Source: Rebecca billardiae RCC1528
Lineage: Eukaryota > Protista > Haptophyta
Direction of reading: 5' to 3'
Assembly (NCBI GenBank): GCA_965240325.2
Contig: OZ251236.1
Span: 1,054,001-1,118,000 of the forward strand
DNA length: 64,000 nucleotides
Shown here: piece by piece, positions 11,280-50,314 of the stretch
Layout of the letters: each line of letters starts with the position of its first letter
Position numbering within the stretch: the stretch's first letter is position 1
Program-made: the position numbers and the translations under genes
Notes under the pieces: generated by a model
Databases searched by the model: none
The model's input: only the letters and a program-made list of their open reading frames with translations
Told to the model about the DNA's origin: nothing

Positions 11280-12319
11280 TTAACTATAGTTAGTATCAGT
11301 AGCCGCCAGTGTAGATCGCATCGTCAGTGATGAGCAGTACGTATACTACGTAGCGCGCAGTTTTAGTTTCGTCAGGGTCGTCGGAGCAGCTTGCGCATGA
11401 CGAGCGCATATGTCACAGCGCAGTGTCCGAGTGGCCGTCCGATGAGACGACGTAGCGCGGCCGCCCGCCCGCGGCGGAGTCCGCCCTCGGCCGACGACGA
11501 TGCCACTACTGACGGCTACTACTGCACTGAGACTGCAGGCGCGCGCTGCGACTTAAGTATAACTACTGCCACAGACAGGCCACAGCGGGCACAGGGGGGT
11601 CCGCAGATGTCGATGAAGGTTCCCACTTCGGAAAGCAGAGTAGCAGCTTATAGCAGAAGCCGCCATGCATGGCGGGCGTCATGAATCCCCGTCCCACAGC
11701 GATCCAAGGCCCCAGCACCACGACTGGGTCACCGAAGCGTGGCGTAGGCAGGTTGGTGCGTTCGTACGAGCGCATGGGCATGAGTGACTGTGACAGCTAC
11801 TTCCTTTCCGACTTTATTATTTCGACCACTCTCACGAATCCACGTCCACGTCCTCGTGCCGACGTGCGTTCAGGCGCGCGCGTGAGGCTGCGCATGGGTG
11901 GGCAAGTAGCAGGGACCAGGATCACCGTTCTGACGGGCATGATGCCGACCTCTTTATTGGTATACCTTGCGACGGTGCAGACCAGTCATCAATATGTTCG
12001 TCCGTATCGGACCCAACCACACATCACGGACCGTGATGAGTACCTAACGACGATGATGATCAATAATGACCGCGTTCCGCGGTCCTTTTCTGCATAGAAT
12101 CAACGCAGTTGGGGGCCCGCGGTGGCCGTGCAATCGCGGCTCTCCGCCGTAGTGGCAGTTCGCCAGTTGAAGTCGGTTCTGAGATGACTGAAGCTATATT
12201 AGTCCGACCGTCGCCCTGCCTGCGCGACCGCGAGACTCATTCACACTTCACACAATCACAGCAGCGGACCTGAGACCGCACCCGGCACCGGTCGTCAAAT
12301 CGGACGTCCGTCTGACAAC

Positions 12320-12464
12320 TAGCTGCCAAATGTCCAACTGGCTGATCAGCTCGGATCCGACCCGTCCGCGATCGTGCCATCGGCATCGGAATTACTACTA
12401 GTAGCTGCCAAACTGTGTCCAACTCTGGCTGATCAGCTCGGATCCGACCCGTCCGCGATCGTGC
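12320..12464. repeat. ~60-bp imperfect direct repeat, 2 copies
   Basis: TAGCTGCCAAA...GGCTGATCAGCTCGGATCCGACCCGTCCGCGATCGTGC at 12320-12377 and 12402-12464. Confidence 0.85.
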
Positions 12465-46392: not shown

Positions 46393-46533
46393 TAGTTGGC
46401 GCGCACCGCCAACCCATATTATTGCGTCCTGCGCCCAACTGGGCTGGGTACGCACCCAGCCGCCTTGGCGTCCGGACTCCTGGCCTCCTCAGCCGCCAAG
46501 GCGCCCACCCGGCATGGGCCCGATTCCATCACG

Positions 46534-47850
46534 ATGGCGGCCGACGACTTCGACAGCGCTCTGGGGTGGTGGGCACAGCTCCTCGACGCGCTGCCGGCGC
46601 TCATCGTCGTGTCCGACGAGGATGGCGAGCGCATCGCGCACGCGACGGCCCCCGCTCTCGCTCTCTCCGCGCACACCGCCGAGCAGGTCCGCGATCTGTA
46701 CGACCCGCGCACGCTCGTGCTCGGCGGACCTCGCGAGACGCCCGTGCGCGCGTGGGCCGGCGAGGCGCGCGTGCAGCGCGGCAGCGGGCAGCCGGCGCTC
46801 CCCGTGCTGCTCGTCGTGCAGCCACTCAGGCCACCCGCCGGCGCGAGCGCGCGCGACGACGCGCTCTCGCTCTGGGCCATCGTGCAGCGCGCGCCCGCCG
46901 CCTCGCCGGCGCGCGCCGAGCGCATCGCAGACATCCTCGAGCACTGGCGGCCGCTGCTCGCCGAGCTGGCCCAAGGCGTCGGCGTGCTCGACGCAGACAA
47001 CGCGTCCGACCTGAGCCGAGCCGTCCTCGCCCCAGCCCTCGACGCCGCGCTCGGCGGGCACACGTCTGCGGCTGCGGCCGCGTGGAGCGCGCACGTGCGC
47101 GCGCGCGCGCGCAGCGGCGCGCGCGCTGCCAGCCTGCGCCTGCCAGGCGTCGGCGTCGGCGCGGAGCGCGAGCTGGCCGTCTCGTTGCTGCCCCTCTGGG
47201 ACGAGCGCGGGCGCACCGAGCGGTGGTGCGCCCTCACGGTCGACGTCACCGAGCGCAGCCCGGTGCTTGCGCGCGCCTGGCGCCTTGCCGGCGCCGCGGG
47301 CGCGGGCGCTCGCGGCACGCAGTCAGCTGTCCTGGGGAGCGGCGCGCAGGGCACGGTGTGTGCGGCGCGCAGCCTCGCCGACGGCACGCTCGCCGCGGTG
47401 AAGAGCGTCGACGTCCGCACCACGCCCGCCGCCGAGCTCGAGCGCGTGCGGCGCGAGGCCGTGGCAGTCGCGCGCGTGCACGTCAGCGAGGCCGCGAACG
47501 CGGCAGCCGCGGACGCACCAGGCGGGTCGAGGCCGCTTCAAAACGGCGGCGGTGGCGGCGGCGCCGGCGGGCTCGACGGCGGCGGCGCGGCGCACGTGCC
47601 GCCGCTGCTGGGCGCGTACGAGGGCTCGCGCGCGCTCCGCCTCGTCTTCGCGCTCGCGCCCGGCGAGCCGCTGCAGCGCGTGCTCGACCGATCGGAGCGC
47701 GAGGGTGTGCCCCTGCCGGTAGATGTGGGCGCGTCCCTGGCCGCGCAGATCTTCATCTCGGTCTCGAATCTGCATGCCGCGGGCGTGTACCACTGGGACG
47801 TGAAGCCGGCGAATATCGTGCTCGATCTGGGCGCGCGGCGGCTCGCGCTC
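46534..47850 (+). pseudogene. PAS-PAS-Ser/Thr kinase, apparently truncated before the DFG motif
   Basis: Two PAS/PAC-like segments (LLDALPALIVVSDEDG; LPLWDERGRTERWCALTVDVTER), then kinase motifs LGSGAQGTV, AAVK and HWDVKPANIVL. The sequence then switches abruptly to (CTGAATATACGG)3 and lower-GC DNA. Confidence 0.7.
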
Positions 47851-48592
47851 TCTCTGAATATACGGCTGAATATACGGCTGAATATACGTGGTTTTACGCG
47901 CTTGTGTGCCACTGACAGATCGATTCAGCGACCTCGATTTATTAGGGTATACCAACTTCGGATGTCACGTATGTCACATATATAGCCGTCACTGAGTCCG
48001 GATAGGTCCGGATTGGGCGCCGAATTCCGAAGCCCCGGACCCGGGGCTTCACTTTAGTACACCGCAAACGAGCTACTGCTAGCCATTGCGCGTGCTGTGA
48101 CTCGATGTCAATTGCCCCAGCGTGGCCTGTCTGTGGGTGCCCCAATCGGCGGCGGCGACCCCTTCTCTGCCTGTAGTTCGACTCAGATGCATGCATTCAA
48201 ACCAGAAAATCCGACGAATTTCCGGACAGGTTACCGTGACGCTTTTTTATTTGCTTTTCTTTTATGTGCTTCTGCTACAATAAGATGATGACTATATAGC
48301 AGTCGCGTCACAGTCGTAAGTGAGTACAGTAGTAGATCGTCAGGCTATATAGATCATATACAGCGCAACTGGCGGGCGCTAGTAGACTCTGCTACATGCA
48401 CGATACTACTTTAATAGTAGTCTGCTGACAGGATGTGATGGCAGGCGGATGGACTGCATCAATATAATAGTTATTAATAAGACGGGACCGACGATGCATG
48501 GTGCGGGACCTCGTCGCCGCTACTGTCCGAAGAGACCCCGTGGTGCACGCACGGTGCGCCTACGCCGAGCGCGTGCCCGGGGCCGAAGGAAG

Positions 48593-50314
48593 CTAGCCGA
48601 AAATGTCGTCGCGGTCTAACTTCCTTCCCCGGTGGCGCCCGACAAACGTGCGCAGGTTCCACGGGTTGGACTCGAGCCTGTCGCGAAACAAGTTGGCGAT
48701 GCGCTCCTCAAAGCCTTGGTCGTTCATGAGGCGACTGGTGAAGGGGCTCGAGCCAAAGATGGACGCAAAGCACACGTGGTCCTCATCGCCGTGCGCCTGC
48801 AGCACATCGAGCCAGTGCTGGAAGCGCGCGTGCGCACGGTCGTCGAGCAAGCGCGCGGCCGTGCTGTTGCTCATGAATGTGACGAAGGGCTGCGCGCCGA
48901 GCACACCGAGCCAGTACTGAAAGCGCGCATGCGCATGGTCGTCGAGCAAGCGCGCGGCCACGGTGCCGCTCATGAATGTGACGAAGAGCTGCGCGCCGAG
49001 CACACCGAGCCAGTACTGAAAGCGCGCATGCGCATGGTCGTCGAGCAAGCGCGCGGCCACGCTGTTGCTCATGAATGTGACGAAGAGCTGCGCGTCGTCG
49101 AGCAAAACGAGCCAGTACTGAAAGCGCGCATGCGCATGGTCGTCGAGCAAGCGCGCGGCCACGCTGTTGCTCATGAATGTGACGAAGAGCTGCGCGTCGT
49201 CGAGCAACTCGAGCCAGTACTGAAAGCGCGCATGCACATGGTCGTCGAGCAAGCGCGCGGCCACGCTGTCGCACATGAATGTGACGAAGAGCTGCGCGCC
49301 GAGCACACCGAGCCAGTACTGAAAGCGCGCATGCGCATGGTCGTCGAGCAAGCGCGCGGCCACGCTGTTGCTCATGAATGTGACGAAGAGCTGCGCGCCG
49401 AGCACCTTGAACCAGTACTCGAGCCGGTCGTCGTGAGCGGAGAGGTCCAAGTACATCGCCCCATGCGTGAGCACGGCGCGCAGCACGGCGCCTCCGCGCG
49501 CGTGCCACTTGCGCAGCAGACCTTCCACCGCGGGCACGTGCGCGTCCATGTGCCGCAGGTGAGCGTGCTCGCGCAAGAATCGGCCGCTGTCGTTGTCGTA
49601 GAGCAGTCGTGTGAGCATCACGCGCGCCTTGGCTCTGGCTTCCACCTCCGCGGCCAGGTCACCCAGCGCAGCGTCGATGCGCGCGTCGACCTGCGAGTAG
49701 TCGTCCGGTGTCTTAAGCGCGCGCATGCCGTTGAGCCTGCACATCGTCAGCTTGAACAGCTTCACGGCGCCTGGGGCTCGCGCGGCGACGAGGTGCGCCG
49801 AGGGATGCGGCGCGCCTTCGAGCGCGAGGAAGCGGTGTTGGCCGAGCTCGTAGAGCGAGACGAGGTGCTGCTCGGAGATGAATGCGATGCGCTTCACGAG
49901 ACCCAGCTCGATGGCCTTGTCGAATGCCGCCTGGCATGTGCGCCCCGCCACGTACGCGCATGCGGGGAAGCGCGCGCACATCGAGTCCAGGTGCTCGTTG
50001 AAGCGCGTGAGCCAGGCGGACACGAGCTCGACGTCGCTCGCAAAGCTCGCGAGCACGCGCTGGTCAATCGCAGCATTCGTTGTGGTTGAGCTGAGCGTGC
50101 ACAGGTCCACCCAGGTGATGGGCGGCACGGGCGTAAGCAGCTCGCGCATCTCGATCTCGGTGCGGCTCACGTTCGTGACGCTCGCGTTGGCTTGCGGGTA
50201 CAGGCCCAGCACAAAGAGAGCATTGGTTCCCCGCGGCGTGAGCGGGGGCTCCCAAGACTTGGCATCGAAGCCTTGGCGCAAACACGTCCGTTGGCGCTTC
50301 ACGAGATCGTTCAT
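48593..50314 (-). CDS. 573-aa protein: putative UDG-like N-terminal domain plus six 33-34-aa tandem helical repeats
   Basis: Intact intronless ORF from ATG 50314. Repeats at 48818-49417, consensus YWLGVLG-AQLFVTFM[SNS]VAARLLDDHAHARFQ. N-terminal motifs LFVLGLYP, WVDLC, YVAGR and PHPS. Confidence 0.85.
   Translation of the reverse strand: MNDLVKRQRTCLRQGFDAKSWEPPLTPRGTNALFVLGLYPQANASVTNVSRTEIEMRELLTPVPPITWVDLCTLSSTTTNAAIDQRVLASFASDVELVSAWLTRFNEHLDSMCARFPACAYVAGRTCQAAFDKAIELGLVKRIAFISEQHLVSLYELGQHRFLALEGAPHPSAHLVAARAPGAVKLFKLTMCRLNGMRALKTPDDYSQVDARIDAALGDLAAEVEARAKARVMLTRLLYDNDSGRFLREHAHLRHMDAHVPAVEGLLRKWHARGGAVLRAVLTHGAMYLDLSAHDDRLEYWFKVLGAQLFVTFMSNSVAARLLDDHAHARFQYWLGVLGAQLFVTFMCDSVAARLLDDHVHARFQYWLELLDDAQLFVTFMSNSVAARLLDDHAHARFQYWLVLLDDAQLFVTFMSNSVAARLLDDHAHARFQYWLGVLGAQLFVTFMSGTVAARLLDDHAHARFQYWLGVLGAQPFVTFMSNSTAARLLDDRAHARFQHWLDVLQAHGDEDHVCFASIFGSSPFTSRLMNDQGFEERIANLFRDRLESNPWNLRTFVGRHRGRKLDRDDIFG
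48818..49417 (-). repeat. Coding tandem repeat, 6 units of 99 or 102 bp
   Basis: Units of 33, 33, 34, 34, 33 and 33 aa total 600 bp and are near-identical at the DNA level. Confidence 0.97.

Follow-up and report, generated by a model that had tools for sequence, protein, structure and literature searches.

Enzymes of the uracil-DNA glycosylase (UDG) superfamily usually carry a polar catalytic residue in motif A (family 1 Asp, families 2 and 3 Asn, family 4 Glu), but family 5 enzymes are active despite having no polar residue in this motif (GLAPA). The fold can also act on bases other than uracil, as thymine-DNA glycosylase (TDG) excises 5-formylcytosine (5fC), 5-carboxylcytosine (5caC) and mismatched T. 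Transcription activator-like effector (TALE) nucleases (TALENs) and tethered glycosylase base editors are laboratory constructs. The natural TALEs and TALE-like proteins (AvrBs3/PthA, RipTALs, Bat1/BurrH and MOrTL1/2) are built of near-identical tandem repeats of 33-35 amino acids, for which the consensus X6-V-X6-G-X13-L-X4-6 has been given (PMC4787788). Here we describe a gene of the haptophyte Rebecca billardiae RCC1528 whose product combines a predicted UDG-like domain with repeats of a TALE-like pattern. It was found in a 64,000-nt stretch of contig OZ251236.1 (positions 1,054,001-1,118,000; hereafter the window, to whose forward-strand numbering all coordinates refer), where it forms a complete intronless open reading frame (ORF) at 48596-50314 on the minus strand, with 573 amino acids from the first ATG and the stop codon at 48593-48595. 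The protein consists, in this order, of a UDG-fold head, a helical linker, six repeats of 33 or 34 amino acids and a C-terminal cap. In our judgement the chances are about even that the gene product, as predicted, is a repeat-guided DNA base-excision or base-flipping enzyme.

Predicted fold of the N-terminal domain

A first-pass annotation of this DNA, made from the letters alone, had taken the order of four short motifs as a sign that the N-terminal part of the protein has a UDG-like fold. Such a fold is indeed predicted for the head (residues 1-200; 49715-50314, minus strand), which was delimited with an AlphaFold2 model and structure searches. The model, based on an alignment of 64 sequences, reached a predicted local distance difference test score (pLDDT) of 95.4 and a predicted template modelling score (pTM) of 0.92, and Foldseek against the PDB returned an E-value of 3.8e-4 with prob 1.0. 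When the model was compared with the 48,161 representative chains of the VIA-align set, the first nine places were all taken by members of the UDG superfamily: the Thermotoga maritima UDG (1l9g; Z 11.2), UdgX (10.7), BdiUNG (9.8), a phage polymerase UDG-like domain (9.6), TDG (9.6), Tth UDG (9.4), MUG (8.2), SMUG2 (7.6) and the D. radiodurans MUG (7.5). The first entry from outside the superfamily had a Z of 6.8. A second look over the Foldseek top 1000 gave the S. tokodaii family 4 UDG 4zby as the best match (Z 12.8 over 163 residues, 3.4 A), and all of the best 50 matches listed there belonged to the superfamily (UDGs, UdgX, TDG or MUG). The matches of the head in BFVD were phage UDGs and UDG-like polymerase domains, a shape search of the Atlas led, at a TM-score of 0.62, to a cluster carrying PF03167, and language-model features of the head pointed to a 'UDG superfamily protein' at 0.92. 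In the model, strand 33-37 is followed by GLYP, strand 66-70 ends in D70, strand 118-123 is followed by G124 and strand 160-168 is followed by HPS, with a helix (173-176) directly after it. The conserved motifs are all found at the C-terminal ends of beta strands, the place that the active-site loops occupy in UDGs.

The closest structural relatives are the family 4 UDGs (S. tokodaii 4zby and 4zbx, T. maritima 1l9g), with Z values of 12.8, 12.1 and 11.2 over 160-165 residues. The head has in common with them the strand order, the G-x-x-P loop after strand 1 and the hairpin before the last strand, which is followed by H-P-S/A. It is, however, only about 8-11% identical to these enzymes, and unlike them it has no conserved set of four Cys, carries Asp for the Asn of strand 2 and is fused to a repeat array. 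Motif A reads GLYP(P/Q)A in the head family versus GE(A/G)PG in family 4. UdgX of M. smegmatis (6ail/6ioc, Z 10.7-11.0) and the family 5 UDGb of T. thermophilus (2d3y, Z 9.1-9.4) also match the fold, but they differ from the head, which is without iron-sulfur cysteines and has other conserved residues outside motif B. In family 2, human TDG (4jgc) matched with Z 10.9 and E. coli Mug (1mug) with Z 8.5; family 2 carries Asn in motif A (GINPG in Mug) and lacks a motif-B His (NPSGLS), whereas the head family has Tyr and an invariant His there. In phage family-A DNA polymerases, too, a UDG-like N-terminal domain is fused to a DNA enzyme (phiLo 9qhs, Z 9.6; also in BFVD), but the head has another fusion partner and other conserved residues.

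The motif order could also be a chance resemblance, the head having some other fold. Sequence searches of Pfam and the PDB were blank: no PF03167 match was obtained for the window protein in Pfam up to an E-value of 10, and phmmer and profile searches of the head against the PDB (the latter with 5 and with 64 sequences) gave nothing. A hidden Markov model (HMM) of the family gave no significant score against E. coli Ung, Mug or Vsr, and only the APHPS of Ung was aligned. PF03167 was the most frequent weak Pfam match among the relatives (2/64, E about 0.01; 0.012). In addition, AlphaFold had done poorly with an alignment of 5 sequences (pLDDT 55.6), although the best TM-scores of that model were nonetheless to UDGs. 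Against such a coincidence stand the high-confidence model and four independent structure and feature searches that point to UDGs, and the motifs coincide with conserved columns. We find this explanation scarcely credible. Residues 1-200 are, as judged from the model, a new family of the UDG superfamily that is invisible to Pfam.

Conserved motifs and predicted active site

The four motifs occur in the proposed order, all on the minus strand between 49790 and 50218 and inside the single uninterrupted ORF of 573 amino acids. They were located in the translation as LFVLGLYP (50195-50218), WVDLC (50099-50113), YVAGRTCQA (49928-49954) and PHPSAHL (49790-49810). A word search brought up four relatives, namely two Joint Genome Institute (JGI) metagenome proteins, one protein from Tribonema minus and one from Pavlovales sp. 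CCMP2436. The deposited Pavlovales protein (P0004) matches the family through PHPSW and diverges completely after it, which is probably a frameshift or gene-model error and not a different architecture. In a profile search of 1.84 billion representatives, 97 relatives of the head were found at E<=1e-3, 46 of them at E<=1e-10. Conservation was counted in a 64-sequence alignment of head relatives that are 20-47% identical to the window protein. The residues of the named motifs are its most conserved columns and, since the head profile also finds 97 relatives, the motif pattern is not due to chance.

The first-pass annotation had made its reading depend on the conservation of GxxP and HPS in homologues, and both are conserved. 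The equivalent of motif A, GLYPQA (G37-A42; 50189-50206, minus strand), lies at the end of strand 1 according to the model and the alignment, with G or A at position 37 in 59/61 sequences, L38 in 53/62, Y39 in 57 of 62 (the remaining 5 having Phe) and P40 in 60/62. W68-V-D70 (50105-50113, minus strand) ends strand 2, with W68 in 61/64 and D70 in 63/64. Strand 3 with G124 and T126-C127 (YVAGRTCQ; 49931-49954, minus strand) has an invariant glycine (64/64) followed by less conserved T126 (45/64) and C127 (40/64). The equivalent of motif B, PHPSAHL (P169-L175; 49790-49810, minus strand), follows the last strand, with H170 in 64/64, P171 in 58/64, S172 in 61/64 and H174 in 49/64. T52 (62/64) and R104 (59/64) are further conserved columns, and both are found, together with N50, N80, D84 and Q85, among the residues conserved around the predicted pocket.

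To read the active site, E. coli Ung (LGQDPYH, LLLN, LWG, APHPSPLS) and Mug (CGINPG, ILG, LPNPSGLS) served as references. In this register Y39 would stand at the place of the catalytic Asp of Ung (GQDPYH) and of the Asn of Mug (GINPG), D70 would take topologically the place of the uracil-reading Asn of Ung (LLLN), and H170 that of the motif-B His of Ung. The hydroxyl of Y39 is not essential, since Phe replaces it in 5 of the 62 sequences. The head thus appears to keep the leaving-group His and to be without the usual water-activating residue. A four-Cys pattern for a 4Fe-4S cluster is absent from the alignment, the best Cys columns being C127 (40/64), C72 (20/64) and C119 (15/64). Having neither iron-sulfur cysteines nor the usual motif-A residue, the head falls outside family 4 and families 1-3 and would constitute a new family of the superfamily.

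The missing polar residue bears directly on whether the head is catalytic at all. It could instead be a non-catalytic reader or anchor on the array that binds DNA, lesions or modified bases, much as some UDG-fold domains have a structural part in proteins of viral replication. Leu-Tyr in place of Asp, Asn or Glu in motif A is in line with such a role, as are some of the structural neighbours, which include the phage polymerase domain 9qhs (Z 9.6) and the vaccinia D4 holoenzyme subunit 8q3r (Z 5.9); many of the BFVD neighbours are polymerase fusions as well. However, H170, D70 and G124 are near-invariant and the pocket residues are kept across 64 divergent sequences, which is more enzyme-like. 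Moreover, the activity of family 5 without a polar residue in motif A is a precedent for catalysis with GLYP, and the alternative head that is found on the same repeats (see below) is also catalytic-looking, with invariant D, D, H, D and K. We consider a non-catalytic head unlikely, though it is an alternative of some substance. If the head is catalytic, its substrate may not be uracil. An Asn-to-Asp change at the base-reading position of Ung (the UNG N204D work) reportedly moves specificity toward cytosine, and by analogy an Asp in this place is a hint that the base acted on is of the cytosine type or modified, and not uracil. Together with the activity of family 5, this effect makes catalysis on a base other than uracil plausible.

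A repeat array with two hypervariable positions

The head and linker are followed by six tandem repeats of 33 or 34 amino acids (99 or 102 bp), which were defined by Tandem Repeats Finder (TRF) and a unit alignment and span residues 305-504 (48803-49402, minus strand). TRF reported a period of 99, 6.2 copies and 92% nucleotide identity. The differences among repeats 1-5 are all non-synonymous, with zero synonymous ones. In the translation, positions 12-13 read NS in repeat 1 (49364-49369), DS in repeat 2 (49265-49270), NS in repeats 3 (49163-49168) and 4 (49061-49066), GT in repeat 5 (48962-48967) and NS in repeat 6 (48863-48868), all on the minus strand.

A wider comparison was made with 72 units from the window protein and 14 relatives, whose consensus is LG...F.TFMC-xx-VAARL.D..F...L..W.. 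The mean pairwise difference within a protein was highest at position 12 (0.69), followed by position 13 (0.44), all other positions being at or below 0.40. The alphabets at these two sites are restricted across the family, position 12 being almost only N, G or D and position 13 only G or S. Positions 24 and 29 behave differently, as they are very diverse between proteins and uniform inside each protein. The same contrast appears at the nucleotide level. In the Tribonema protein P0013, 26 pairs were non-synonymous and 3 synonymous at position 12. In a viral homologue with 23 repeats of exact period, the non-synonymous and synonymous fractions were 0.66 and 0.14 at position 12 (alphabet G, D, S and N) and 0.51 and 0.04 at position 13 (S and G), while ten scaffold codons showed zero non-synonymous change, their synonymous fractions being 0-0.55 with seven at or above 0.17. 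Purifying selection on the scaffold, combined with diversification at few fixed sites, is, by analogy, the signature known from the repeat-variable di-residues of TALEs. The arrays of relatives comprise from 2 to at least 23 units of 32-36 amino acids, with 10-11 repeats in Tribonema.

The resemblance to TALEs is one of analogy and not of homology. It lies in the near-identical tandem repeats of similar length, in the main differences falling at positions 12-13, which follow a hydrophobic stretch of helix-like character, and in an overlapping alphabet (D, N, G, S). Unlike TALEs, the proteins described here belong to algae and giant viruses and not to bacteria, carry predicted enzyme heads instead of an activation domain, and have no detectable sequence similarity to them. 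The TALE-like consensus is not matched in the 72 units, where V occupies position 7 in 46/72, position 14 holds V or I (70/72) and never G, and the Leu is at position 27 (55/72) and not at 29. Language-model features of the array of one relative placed TAL-effector clusters at ranks 2-3 (0.79-0.80), which we regard as a lead. When the viral contig (L012) and the window were scanned for targets of the viral array of 23 repeats, under an assumed code of D=C, G=T, N=R and S=A, the best match was 17/23, no better than with shuffled arrays (maximum 17-18).

An alternative to a sequence-reading array is that the head is a true glycosylase while the repeats act as a solenoid for protein binding or structure, or bind DNA with no code per repeat, the whole being an ordinary repair or chromatin factor. 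The lack of similarity to TALEs and the departure from the published TALE-like motif agree with this, and so do the variability of several positions besides 12-13, the existence of arrays as short as 2-3 repeats and the target search under a TALE-type code, which yielded nothing beyond its shuffled controls. Yet the restricted alphabets at positions 12-13 are kept in divergent members, these sites are the ones that most consistently escape homogenisation, the repeat number ranges from 2 to at least 23, and the heads are interchangeable and DNA-directed. An array without a programme seems to us rather improbable.

Relatives, alternative heads and giant viruses

Among 158 collected proteins, 45 have a UDG-like head with at least two repeats, and 23 have repeats without a UDG-like head. 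Full-length homologues have their parts in the same order as the window protein. Most of the 23 begin with a different, charged N-terminal domain of about 150 amino acids with invariant D, D, H, D, K, R and R, arranged as ...EYDGG.YH...D..KT...V.RVR (alignment A6: P0127, P0135, P0136, P0139-P0141, P0144, P0146-P0148 and P0150-P0157). One of these proteins with second head and repeats, P0127, is labelled 'Megaviridae environmental sample'. This second head resembles the PD-(D/E)xK nucleases of the Vsr/DUF559 type. No significant PDB or Pfam match was obtained for it, and the sole database hint was a weak one to PF18741 (REase_MTES_1575, E 0.025-0.045). From its D...(E/D)YDG..H...D..K pattern, the second head is possibly a nuclease, which we put forward as a lead.

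A further combination is found in P0107/P0112 (L005:10001-15121) and in P0131, where the UDG-like head, with a few repeats, comes after a helicase of the Ski2/Sec63 type. Behind the repeats of P0107/P0112 lie about five cysteine-rich units of 36 amino acids (CTVKGCSK..QSGCNGMC.AH), which resemble EsV-1-7 repeats. The helicases bring up the idea that the array reads RNA, in the manner of PPR, OPR or HPR proteins, and that the protein acts on RNA or RNA-DNA hybrids. Many helicases of the Ski2/Brr2 (Sec63) type are RNA-acting, and variable helical repeats of 33-38 amino acids are common RNA readers in algae. On the other hand, no organelle transit peptide is evident in the window protein, whose fold begins at residue 3, and the viral and Tribonema homologues have basic N-termini that resemble nuclear localisation signals. 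To our knowledge, all characterised UDG-fold proteins act on DNA, which also counts against RNA reading. An RNA-directed role of this sort is in our opinion very unlikely.

The full viral homologue is a protein of 1157 amino acids encoded on the plus strand at L012:9959-13432 (IMGVR_UViG_3300045973_001241, from IMG/VR). It has the same head, linker and tail, and at least 23 repeats of 33 amino acids. Its neighbours encode SNF2 and UvrD-like helicases, a hybrid histidine kinase and a GT2 glycosyltransferase, which make the contig look phaeovirus-like. Two further relatives are located on dense, orphan-rich, viral-looking contigs with ankyrin, FNIP, RING and SNF2 genes. A viral-contig scan with P0090 gave no match. 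In Tribonema minus the family has at least 7 copies. One of them, P0003 (gene at 6001-8322 of L004, JAFCMP010000112.1), lies about 3 kb from a Pox_VLTF3 gene at 11513-12340 and near DUF5767 and DUF5901 genes, and its surroundings are probably an integrated giant-virus region. Integrated 'xanthoviruses' have been mentioned (PMC12993054), and the Tribonema copy beside the VLTF3 gene fits these. A second copy, P0006, is about 125 kb from P0003 on the same contig. Its gene model is apparently truncated, as the repeats run past the annotated end (L007, to about 11871). The family is common to stramenopile and haptophyte algae and to giant viruses.

Other parts of the gene and genomic setting

The linker (residues 201-304; 49403-49714, minus strand) has an HLR motif and a terminal repeat-like unit, AVLTHGAMYLDL...LEYWFKV, and is kept in relatives, including the viral homologue. 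Its terminal unit may be a degenerate cap repeat. At the other end, the C-terminal cap (residues 505-573; 48596-48802, minus strand) consists of a degenerate repeat, FASIFGSSPFTSRL..., and a basic tail ending in ...GRKLD; it is conserved in the JGI, Tribonema and viral homologues. In a Pfam search of the full protein, PRY (PF13765) and DUF4149 came out as hits. We rejected both as artefacts, since they pass the cut-off because one partial match (15-26 residues; 15/49 profile positions) recurs in every repeat, and they are unfit for annotation.

The gene has a GC content at third codon positions (GC3) of 0.86, similar to that of neighbouring cellular genes, and its neighbours (MCM, PAS-kinase, GFO/IDH/MocA oxidoreductase and MFS transporter) are ordinary cellular genes. 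The copy in the window is therefore host-like by codon use and neighbourhood. No flanking terminal inverted repeats were found around the gene, and no paralogue was found within the 64-kb window. The neighbouring ORF with PAS and protein-kinase domains (46396-47985, plus strand) extends as far as kinase subdomain VI and then gives way to a short tandem repeat that translates as LNIRLNIRLNIR. This tandem repeat is probably an intron, which would make the PAS-kinase gene spliced and leave the repeat gene as one that is not.

Proposed mechanism and implications

If the product is a repeat-guided enzyme, the array would lie along DNA with roughly one repeat per base, contacted through positions 12-13 in a TALE-like manner, and would in this way position the head on particular DNA sequences. 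The head would then flip a base out and cleave its glycosidic bond, with His170 stabilising the leaving base. Because the Asp, Asn or Glu of motif A is replaced by Leu-Tyr, we propose that D70, and perhaps N50, N80, D84 or Q85, could recognise the base or activate water. The layout, a DNA-reading array with a cutting or base-removing head, is by analogy that of TALENs and of the TALE- or Cas9-tethered glycosylase base editors, but in contrast to these laboratory constructs the protein is natural, its head is N-terminal and its activity is putative.

Several observations weigh against this proposal. No sequence method ties the head to UDGs at significance, its motif A is without the polar catalytic residue of families 1-4 and has L38 and Y39 there, and the residue equivalences to Ung and Mug come from strand and motif register and not from superposition. 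The window protein has only six repeats, with NS in four, DS in one and GT in one. In the viral array positions 4-5, 16, 28 and 32 are also variable, so that the variable surface is wider than the di-residue. When the 72-unit profile was aligned by hhalign with 16 PthA repeats (pXAC64, Xanthomonas), the probability was 0.05-0.14%, and the repeat unit had no match among PDB chains. In its favour, the idea of repeat guidance gains support from a hypervariable di-residue on a conserved scaffold and from the alternative head and the helicase fusions.

The first-pass annotation had also suggested that the head, joined to the repeats, would be a natural sequence-targeted base-excision enzyme, for example in antiviral or anti-element defence. 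The structural part of this suggestion and the conservation of GxxP and HPS have held up. A purely host-defence reading is not favoured, because giant-virus-like contigs encode full homologues. As the family is common to algae and giant viruses, the protein probably takes part in a conflict, between virus and host or between element and genome, or in the modification or demodification of DNA at specific sites. A broader reading, which we hold tentatively and at somewhat less than an even chance, is that the repeats embody a second, independent natural 'one repeat, one base' code (N, D, G or S at position 12 and S or G at position 13) that aims interchangeable DNA-modifying heads in algae and their giant viruses. 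These heads would be the new UDG-fold glycosylase and the putative PD-(D/E)xK-type nuclease, at times accompanied by a helicase, and would make the proteins natural counterparts of TALENs and base editors.

Full-text searches of the literature retrieved no description of a natural TALE-like array with a glycosylase, of one in algae or giant viruses, or of a phaeovirus DNA glycosylase; a looser search on genome editing led to reviews only. Such proteins are also absent from the results of a 2017 screen for TALE-like architectures (PMC5472282). Taken by itself, the head adds a new variant to a known superfamily; the novelty in nature would lie in the complete architecture, should it function in the way we propose. 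If our reading is true, it adds to the UDG superfamily a family from eukaryotes and giant viruses with an unusual active site, in which motif A carries Tyr and the base-reading position Asp, and which may act on a cytosine-type base, either normal or modified. Natural programmable arrays fused to DNA-processing heads would then exist, an architecture known until now only from engineering. The repeats would provide a new compact recognition scaffold, and their code would be solvable from natural variants with 6, 10-11 and 23 repeats. Finally, what sequence-aimed base excision is for, in the giant viruses that integrate into stramenopile and haptophyte algae and in the host algae themselves, would become a testable question, the candidate uses being the choice of integration sites, silencing or reactivation, and attack on rival genomes.

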